NCBI GenBank assembly: GCA_964270895.1
Contig: OZ185436.1
Source of the DNA: Podarcis filfolensis
Lineage: Eukaryota
Length of the DNA stretch: 64,000 bases
Reading direction: 5' to 3' (one strand)
The translations under genes were made by a program, and so were the position numbers. The notes beneath the pieces were generated by a model. That model worked only from the letters and a program-made list of their open reading frames with translations. It was not told the origin of the DNA and did not search any database. Below are positions 12,001 through 15,000 of the stretch, one piece after another (position 1 is the first letter of the stretch; each line of letters starts with the position of its first letter).

Positions 12001-15000
12001 AAACTTCTTTTATCACCTAAGCTACTGGCAGATAGCTGATCAGCATGCCTGATCATTCTGAATGGTTGGTTATGCTGATTGTAACATACGGTACTTTTCC
12101 CTAACCCAGATATCATAATGGAAGGCCTGTGGTTTAAGGTAAAAGAGTTATTAAAACTCCTAGTCATATTAAAAAAGAAAAATCACACAGGTTAAAAAAA
12201 CAAACAATATTTAAGTTTTTAAAAGGTAGTGGTGGCTGATGGAAGGTTCAGAAGTGGGGTTGGCCACAATGATGTAAGAAGGCTGTTCCTTAGACATTGC
12301 TGCTGATTCTCTCCCAAGATTCCATGGTGACAGTTGGGAAGAATCCCTCCACGCTTTGGAGCCTGCCACCTGGAAATAGGCACAAAAATCTCATTTAGGC
12401 ATTTAGGAAGCTGAATGGTCTTCAGCTATTAACTTTTTGTGCTGGTGGCTGGTGAAAAACTGCATTGGGAGGGCAACACTACAGAATGGCCAGTCCCCCA
12501 TCCTTAGATCCCATTGTAGGGGAAGATGAGCTTCCAGTTGTAGGAGAAAAAGTGCTTTCAGTTATAGGGGAAGATGAGATTTCAGCTTTAGGGGAAGATG
12601 AGCTTTCAGCTTTAGGGGAAGATGAGCTTCCAGTTATAGGGGAAGAAGTGCTTTCCGTTGTATGGGAAGAAGAGCTTGCAGCAGCCACAGAAGCCACATG
12701 TAGGATAAGTTTTCCCACAGGTATGACTGTCCTGCCTCTGATTTTGGCTTTCTTGAAAGGCAGCCTGTGCAGCCACTTTGAGTGCTGGTAGAGTTAGTTA
12801 TTACCTTTTGCATATTAAAAAAATAGGTTTATTTTATTTATTAAATTTCCAAACTACCCTTCATTCAAGGATCGCAGTGCAGTTTACAATATCAGAACAC
12901 AAAAATACATTGCATGGTAACAAAACAAAAAGCAATAACCCATCCCCAGGTTGCTGTATCAATATATGCATTAAATGTTACAGGCTTGGTTATATGATTT
13001 CTTTCTCGTGTGGTAAAAGTAGCTGTAATAAGCAATCCCATCTTGAACTGAATTCTTTGGGCATCATTTTCGACTTGGTGGGTGGGTGTATAGCTTGGTC
13101 CAGCAGAGTTTTGAGAGCTGCCTGGAGAATATGGAGTACATGGCCCTTCTGTTTCTCACACTGCTTGGCCATGTCCAAGTAAAGAAAGCAGGGCTCTGTC
13201 CCCAGTACCAGCTTCACCTAACCTGGCTAGCCAAGCCAAAAACACATCTTTGTCAGGATCTAGCCCCTCCTCTTCAGTGCAATCCTCTGCATGTTTTTAT
13301 ATATCCCATTGTATTCAGTGGAGTTTACGCCCAGGTAAGTGTGCATAGGATGGTGGTCTTATCCCAGAGCTTGCACTGCCGGAGATTATGAGCGATCACT
13401 TGCTCCCCTTGTCCTGCTGCAAACTTTGGGAGTGAAGGAGGCAAGGCAGTGGAAGGTGAAGGTGGTGGCTGTTCCTAACTCCCCCCTTCAAAGCTTACAG
13501 CTGGGGTATAGCTCTTTCCTATTGTTTCATCAATAAAGCTCAATAAAACTGGATCAGTTTCTGCACCACCACCCTCAAGCTCCAGGGCTGCAGCTCCACT
13601 TGTCACCCCTGCAATGTGGGTGATGGTCACAGTGAGCAGGTATCTACCCTCCTGCCTATAGGAATCTTTCTGTTCACAGGTATAGGGAAGGGCAATTCGT
13701 ATTATTTACATTTGGGGAATTTTGAAATGGAGATTGGCATAGTAACTTATCTTTCATTGTATATAATCAGTGCAAGATGTGCTTAAAGCAGATTCTAAAG
13801 GCAGCTAGTTTTGGGTGGAGCCTCCCAAGAGTTAGAAATACAGATCTAATTTTAACAGCGTTGAAAAACCTATATGTTGCTTTTAAGCTTTGGTACTGTG
13901 GTAGAAAATCTTGCTTCCTGTATTTTTTCTTCACTCAACCATTTTGTGGTAATCTTCAGCATGAAAATGCTTGCATCTTGCAGAACGTTTTGCATCAGTG
14001 ATATTATAATGTGACCAAAGCTCTAAATATACATGAGCCAATGTGGTGATAGAAACAGCATGCTCTTAAATGTTACTATGAAATATTTTTTTGTACCAAG
14101 TAAAGCAGCTTTGTGCTCAATAGCACCTTCTGGTGGCAACTTTGTCTTGGAAGGCAAAGGGGGAAGAGAAGATGGTGGCTTATCTCCCTAGAAAGGTGAA
14201 CAGAAACTCTTTGCCCTCTGAACCCGGAAATAATGGGAGTTTCCACTTGGGGTGATTAGATCAAGTGCTCCAACTTAAACGTGAAAGAGATTCTGATGTG
14301 TCTTTTCCCCCCTAATACAGCTGGCAGGGAAGCAGATGACATTGTCAACTGGTTGAAGAAACGCACAGGCCCAGCAGCCACTGCCCTGGCAGATGTAGCT
14401 GCTGCTGAGAAACTGGTGGAATCCAGTGAAGTTGCTGTGATCGGGTTCTTCAAGGTAGAGTGCTTCACTCGGTTACTGTTGCTTTTAGCTGACCTCCCTT
14501 GGAGGCCTTTATCTGGGAAGAGATTACACCAGGGCTCGCTAACCTGTTTAGGACCATGGGCAGTCTAACACAAAGTTCCCTGGGTGACCTGAGCCTAGAC
14601 AGTCTCTTAACCTAACCTACCTCCAATTGGGGAGGAGGAGAACCATGTATGGCACCTTCACTTCTTAGGGGGAAGGTGGGATAAAAATAGAATAAATAAA
14701 ATTGCAAACCAGAGAAACTTGTGGGCGTTGCACACCACAACCTGTTCAATTGGTTACAGTAGAATCAATCGTGCCCAATTTCAGCGGGGAGGGGAATTTG
14801 TGGACACAGGGAAATTACAGCTAGAGTATGATGCCCATTTCTTTATCCCATCTTGGCTCTTTGTTGTTCTTGCATCACTGAGTAAGCAACATGCATCAAA
14901 TCAAGGCATGGTGTGGAGTATTTAAAACTTAAAATCTTCCTTCTTTCTGTTAGGATGCAGAATCTGATGCTGCCAAGCAGTTCTTGTTGGCAGCAGAGTC

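Follow-up and report, generated by a model that had tools for sequence, protein, structure and literature searches.

In the window analyzed here (64,000 nt of Podarcis filfolensis, contig OZ185436.1 of assembly GCA_964270895.1), the complete 11-exon P4HB gene, encoding the protein disulfide isomerase (PDI) PDIA1, is located on the plus strand, and its intron 2 contains a candidate alternative 5' exon. RNA of a related species, referred to below as organism B, contains this exon spliced at the exact position to exon 3 (12720->14321), with a depth similar to that of the canonical 5' end; exon and junction are thus real in that RNA. The explanation that we favor, with somewhat better than even confidence, is that it constitutes a young, lineage-restricted alternative first exon of P4HB ("exon 1b"), born from a 24-bp minisatellite of intron 2. 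The features on which the argument depends are as follows (a slash marks the end of an exon).

8841..9006 (ATG at 8841), plus strand: coding part of P4HB exon 1 (signal peptide and start of the a domain), skipped by the alternative transcript; in the RNA contigs, exon 1 letters form a loose end before 10069.
10069..10275, plus strand: P4HB exon 2, with the CGHC motif of the a domain (the first APWCGHCK), skipped by the alternative transcript; ends ACA G/, phase 1.
10276-14320, plus strand: P4HB intron 2, host of the candidate exon.
12327..12485, plus strand: leader of the alternative exon (part of the 5' untranslated region), 159 nt, defined by a contig of organism B RNA (run X9).
12486..12720, plus strand: coding part of the alternative exon (ATG, 78 codons and 1 nt, ending in phase 1).
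12721..12726, plus strand: splice donor GTATGA (context CAG/GTATGA), used in run X9 and resembling the donor of exon 5.
14321..14454, plus strand: P4HB exon 3, the acceptor exon common to the canonical and alternative 5' paths; matches residues 119-162 of human PDI.

Logan contigs of four runs were placed on 9950-14600: X1, X2 and X13 of organism A, which come from three studies, and X9 of organism B. Both organisms are related species, and the RNA evidence comes from these relatives, none of it from the species of the window. Among the presumed RNA runs, the word share against 12300-12800 amounted to 0.10-0.35 in organism A, 0.18 in organism B (with an equal share, 0.18, in runs X10-X12 of the same study as X9) and at most 0.06 in organisms C and D. 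Runs of another kind, probably DNA, gave 1.00 for organism E, presumably the species of the window, and about 0.5 for organisms F-H.

The canonical joint 10275->14321, which served as a positive control, was seen in all four runs. In X9, a further joint was listed as 12716->14317 with GT..AG borders, and moving the cut by +4 places it at 12720->14321, exactly the junction predicted by a preliminary description of this DNA, which had proposed a first exon hidden in intron 2. The joint is carried by one contig of 414 nt with a mean word depth of 55, which lies on 12327-12716 and, over 390 positions, shows 20 substitutions and a 5-nt gap relative to the window (about 5%). The remaining intron 2 bins of X9 are at or near depth 0, with the exception of interspersed repeats further downstream. 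That the X9 cover stems from a retained intron or from pre-mRNA was rejected on these grounds: the other intron bins are empty, repeats aside, and the contig is spliced.

The exon 1-2 contig of X9 has a depth of 74.5 and the downstream mRNA contig a depth of 306, and the alternative branch makes up about 42% of the summed depth of the two 5' branches. This sum (129.5) is less than half of the depth of the mRNA body, a shortfall that may reflect either a loss of 5' coverage or a further 5' variant. On the exon 3 side of the joint, the alternative contig has 29 letters from 14317 onward, namely ACAG, which fits both sides, followed by 25 nt of exon 3, and the corresponding side of the canonical contig is also 29 letters long. 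Since CACAG is the shared ending of exon 2 and the candidate exon, the two paths become one 25 nt into exon 3 in a graph built with k=31; a side of 29 letters matches this geometry and thus indicates a true fork in the transcripts, not a chimera.

The 5' end of the alternative exon was deduced from the same contig, which terminates at 12327 with neither unmatched letters nor an upstream joint. No joint leading from exon 1 or exon 2 (9006 or 10275) into the candidate exon was found in the X9 contigs, and the only nearby AG (12332-12333) is crossed without a fork. An internal cassette exon would carry exon 2 letters at the end of the contig; as there are none, a transcript start at 12327 or a little upstream is favored. 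It is therefore likely that the alternative exon is a first exon with its own transcript start, as judged from the end of a contig rather than from cap analysis of gene expression (CAGE) or a full-length read. The preliminary description had likewise preferred a first exon to a cassette exon; the dead end at 12327, the missing joints from exons 1 and 2 and the near-zero depth of the rest of the intron speak for that preference, while a contig end leaves it short of proof.

12200..12326, plus strand: presumed promoter and transcript-start region.

This putative promoter region is CpG-poor (observed/expected ratio of about 0.1, vs 0.86 at exon 1). It contains a TATA-like sequence, TTTAAAAGG, at about 12219-12227, whose role in transcription would be a matter of speculation. 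No signs of a transposon or of long terminal repeats (LTRs) were found around the exon: there are no terminal or flanking repeats and no other copy within the window. Moreover, 12327-12720 is covered by single contigs without loose ends, i.e., it behaves as single-copy sequence, unlike two other parts of intron 2, 12830-12920 and 13304-13351. For lack of a second copy in the window, of terminal repeats and of a multi-copy read signal, an origin of the exon from a transposon or LTR was rejected. The two other parts are matched by many contigs from all four runs, whose ends run into unrelated sequence (depth of about 10-59 in the bin with 12830-12920 and about 1-19 in the bin with 13304-13351), and they behave as interspersed repeats. 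The former, which begins about 110 nt past the new donor, resembles the A/T-rich end of a squamate short interspersed element (SINE).

The sequence features of the exon agree with those given in the preliminary description. The ATG at 12486-12488 lies in a strong Kozak context (A at -3, G at +4), an in-frame TGA is present upstream at 12453-12455, and the frame of 78 codons and 1 nt ends CCC ACA G/GTATGA, with 12720 as the last exon base and the GT at 12721-12722. The donor is in phase 1, which fits exon 3; exon 2 likewise ends ACA G/, and the donor of exon 5 (CAG/GTATGG) is nearly the same. The leader (12327-12485) contains a single upstream ATG, at 12415, which opens an upstream open reading frame (uORF) of 5 codons (12415-12432) in another frame; the next ATG is that at 12486.

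12514..12681, plus strand: tandem repeat (minisatellite) of seven 24-bp units, encoding acidic 8-residue repeats.

According to Tandem Repeats Finder, the unit measures 24 bp and is present 7.0 times, with 81% matches, no indels and a score of 203; a second copy of this repeat is absent from the 64-kb window. One of the three plus-strand frames is open across the array, together with one frame of the minus strand. Because the unit is a multiple of 3, a long open frame arises more easily without selection. Markov shuffling of intron 2 (2000 replicates) produced an ATG frame that was 235 nt or longer and closed at AG/GTRNG in phase 1 in 0.3% of replicates, and the plus strand of the whole window contains eight such frames of at least 150 nt, several of which are true P4HB exons. 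Taken by itself, the DNA sequence is suggestive of an exon and not decisive. The open minus-strand frame (12479-12718) encodes 79 serine-rich residues and was taken as incidental, since the GT..AG joint sets the transcript on the plus strand. A second ATG frame of intron 2, at 13131-13334 (204 nt, phase 0), also ends at an AG/GTRNG site; no exon-like RNA cover was found on it in the four runs, just repeat-type contigs at 13304-13351.

The remainder of the coding sequence (CDS) is shared with the canonical transcript, whose joined exons 1-11 encode 516 aa.

14954-15091, 19145-19249, 19478-19603, 20595-20795, 23101-23221, 23398-23579, 23929-24015 and 26962-27045, plus strand: P4HB exons 4-11, identified by peptide anchors, splice sites and the in-frame joined CDS; they encode the b, b' and a' (CGHC) domains, the acidic tail and KDEL, with the stop at 27045.

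Joining 12486-12720 to exons 3-11 reproduced the fusion protein proposed earlier: 1413 nt encoding 470 aa (about 52 kDa), with no internal stop, one CGHC motif (residue 358) and KDEL. As the frame closes with the regular stop codon of the last exon, nonsense-mediated decay (NMD) is not expected, and translation of the 470-aa form is plausible. The 78-residue head has 20 D/E and 2 K/R residues and a predicted isoelectric point of about 4.05. The preliminary description expected it to lack a signal peptide, and hydropathy bears this out, in that no hydrophobic core is present (highest 9-residue Kyte-Doolittle mean of 1.37, vs 2.52 in the canonical signal peptide). The further claim that the head replaces the signal peptide together with the a domain holds in part. 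The signal peptide and the core of the a domain with its CGHC are gone, but exon 3 begins with 19 residues that align to the final part of the a-domain structure (residues 102-120 of 1MEK), and b-domain structures begin at about residue 16-18 of exon 3. The predicted isoform would accordingly have neither a signal peptide nor the catalytic core of a, and would retain the last helix of a, the b, b' and a' domains, the acidic tail and KDEL.

The following course of events is proposed. Transcription would initiate at the CpG-poor intronic promoter, at or just upstream of 12327, giving an exon of at least 394 nt (12327-12720). Its donor, CAG/GTATGA, would pair with the constitutive acceptor of exon 3, so that exons 1 and 2 are bypassed. 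Past the 159-nt leader with its 5-codon uORF, the frame opened by the ATG at 12486 would continue in phase through exons 3-11, and the product, having no signal sequence, would be made on free ribosomes and remain outside the endoplasmic reticulum (ER). By extension from organism B, the exon may be used in P. filfolensis as well. Since the head evolves as if neutral (see below), any function of the isoform would most likely lie in supplying a signal-less b-b'-a' PDI and not in the repeat peptide. A bolder version, which we put forward only tentatively, is that a lizard clade possesses a signal-less PDI (b-b'-a'-KDEL) that is a major isoform in one tissue or another (with about 40% of the P4HB 5' ends), transcribed from a promoter in intron 2 and with the first 78 residues formed de novo from the 24-bp minisatellite.

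Several observations weigh against the favored explanation. The junction is supported by one assembled contig of one run, which comes from another species and is about 5% divergent from the window. In the three runs of organism A, the 12720->14321 junction was not found despite a P4HB depth of 1456-2475. Across 12720 this organism has solely unspliced contigs with a depth of 2-7 (e.g., 12265-12785 in X1), comparable to the depth of 1-5 elsewhere in its intron 2, and this cover looks like pre-mRNA. As contigs drop rare forms, the null result in organism A is weak evidence of absence.

Further points of this kind come from the evolution of the exon. The exons of organisms A and B were rebuilt from the listed differences, with 19 of the 20 substitutions displayed for each; one substitution per relative is undisplayed, and the rebuilt frames are hence not fully verified. 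The ratio of nonsynonymous to synonymous changes in the open reading frame (ORF) is 10:4 in B and 10:1 in A, where random substitution predicts 10.1 and 7.9 nonsynonymous changes, respectively. The repeat array has diverged by 7.7%, vs 2.7% in its flanks, and over 342 nt of exons 2-3 organism B is identical to the window. As for the head peptide, no homologues were found among proteins of 43-136 aa and no Pfam family was assigned. AlphaFold2, run on the head alone as a single sequence, gave a mean confidence (pLDDT) of 55 with no secondary structure and no fold, so weakly suggesting that the head is probably disordered. A HMMER search of the head against 1.84 billion representatives (50% clustering), whose reach excludes an annotated 470-aa isoform, returned 50 matches, and those inspected were unrelated. 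These were acidic proteins with 8-residue repeats (e.g., DDQLDVVC and GEDQLKVQ units), rejected as homologues because they share periodic composition only.

The ATG, the frame and its length are retained in both relatives, the frame is open in all three species, and the copy number of the repeat is identical in A and B (no indel is listed inside the array). To the extent that the contig covers it, the donor of B matches that of the window; in A it reads TAG/GTATGT, altered but still usable. The orthologous region of related lizards, to which the preliminary description had looked for a decision, thus keeps the ORF and its ATG. Conservation of the frame was nevertheless rejected as evidence of coding, as random substitution sets leave it open in 65% (B) and 72% (A) of trials, and its retention is expected by chance. 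In the first 31 codons, a single change, which is synonymous, separates the three species, and this is not significant. From these comparisons, the head coding sequence looks neutral, with no sign of selection on the peptide.

Among side observations, the candidate intronic exon of either relative is about 4-5% divergent from that of the window, and in exon 2 the changes 10121 G>A and 10155 C>A are common to all three runs of organism A. Three stretches of intron 2 are also missing from contigs of organism A: 100 nt at 10720-10819 (bordered by AT..TA), 23 nt at 11340 and 11 nt at 12029. They are interspecies indels, not splicing.

With these data, it is possible, though well short of an even chance, that the transcript is real and the isoform is not. 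A cryptic intronic promoter, active in some tissue of organism B and helped by a chance donor, would then produce neutral RNA that is poorly translated or whose product is rapidly degraded, the frame being an accident of the 24-bp repeat. Such an account fits the substitution pattern, which is indistinguishable from neutral, the retention of the frame at the level expected by chance, the head without homologue, domain or predicted fold, the lack of splicing in organism A, and a period that holds one frame open without selection. It fits less well with the abundance of the transcript in X9, where a depth of 55 stands against 74.5 for the canonical 5' contig. Moreover, no long ORF precedes this frame in the transcript, and it opens in a strong context and stays in phase to the normal stop of the last exon, so that scanning ribosomes should translate it and NMD should not apply; the near-invariance of the first 31 codons points the same way.

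That nothing of the kind occurs in the species of the window appears unlikely. The window would then contain an ordinary intronic minisatellite with a chance ATG and GT, and use of the exon would be private to organism B. Organism A, about equally distant, indeed lacks the junction in three runs, but in the window the ATG, the frame, the leader and the donor are all intact, the donor being the same as in B to the extent covered by the contig.

We consider it decidedly improbable that the sequence at 12327-12720 is spliced internally, as a cassette or poison exon, or forms the 3' portion of a longer exon transcribed from the canonical promoter, and is not a first exon. The 5' boundary is defined solely by the end of one contig, an AG (12332-12333) follows a pyrimidine-rich run, and the in-frame stop at 12453 would turn such an exon into a poison exon. 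On the other hand, the X9 contig passes through 12334 to 12327 unforked, and a cassette would bring about 25-30 exon 2 letters at the contig end, together with a joint from 10275 or 9006 into the region, neither of which is seen. A chimeric contig, in which assembly fused intronic pre-mRNA reads to exon 3, deserves next to no credence and was rejected: the joint side has just 29 letters, and sides below 30 at a likeness setting below 95 call for caution, but the joint coincides precisely with a GT..AG pair, the contig has a mean word depth of 55 where other X9 intron bins are about 0 (repeats aside), and the 29 letters are those predicted for a k=31 fork, as at the canonical joint of the same run.

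The favored explanation, an alternative first exon born from the minisatellite, bears on a debated matter. Members of the PDI family acting outside the ER (in the cytosol, in the nucleus or at the cell surface) are usually explained by escape or reflux of ER proteins. If the explanation is correct, a transcript for a signal-less PDI at nearly the level of the canonical 5' end would provide a direct genetic route to non-ER PDI, and a genetically encoded non-ER PDI would be combined with a datable coding first exon derived from a tandem repeat. The locus would then also be a clean example of a new coding 5' exon formed from a minisatellite. As the three related species differ in the use and in the sequence of the exon, the birth of the exon and of its promoter can be traced. 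If, instead, the transcript is neutral noise, the case cautions that exact, abundant and in-frame junctions arise without selection.

Exonization of intronic repeats is a known process, and most of the described cases are internal cassette exons derived from Alu elements or other transposons and included at low levels. The lizard exon resembles them in that an intronic repeat supplies an open frame beside a usable splice site, and that the resulting coding sequence is young and appears to evolve neutrally. It differs in being a 5' exon, in its derivation from a 24-bp minisatellite without transposon structure, and in accounting for about 42% of the 5' paths of a single sample. As to tissue-restricted versions of the PDI scaffold, there is a precedent in PDILT, a testis-specific PDI paralogue with a signal peptide and without classical CGHC motifs. 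The preliminary description had suggested germ-cell expression of the lizard isoform, a likeness to PDILT; however, PDILT is a separate gene whose product keeps a signal peptide, and nothing in the lizard data points to testis.

Closer in principle are yeast SUC2 invertase and gelsolin (plasma vs cytoplasmic), in which secreted and intracellular isoforms are produced from two transcription starts. As in the lizard gene, the signal peptide is lost or exchanged through the use of an alternative 5' exon or start, and one gene serves two compartments. In SUC2 and gelsolin, both proteins have been demonstrated and are conserved, whereas the lizard case is known from RNA of one species and would also involve the loss of a catalytic domain.

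In the literature searched for an alternative first exon or promoter of P4HB that provides a new N-terminus, none was found, and a survey of human splice variants alone was relevant. It describes human P4HB-002 (ENST00000415593, UniProt H0Y3Z3), which encodes 274 aa with no predicted signal peptide and an intact KDEL; this transcript has CAGE tags upstream, a junction confirmed by PCR and no annotated ATG (Kajihara et al., 2020, PMC7640458). Like the predicted lizard form, it is an internal-start P4HB transcript whose product is signal-less and keeps KDEL. It starts much further downstream and has no novel head, whereas the start of the lizard form lies in intron 2 and its predicted 470 aa comprise a 78-residue head of minisatellite origin in addition to b-b'-a'; orthology is not expected. 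A signal-less, KDEL-keeping P4HB transcript with an internal start is thus already known in kind, and what is new in the lizard gene is the start in intron 2, the b-b'-a' extent of the predicted product and its minisatellite head.

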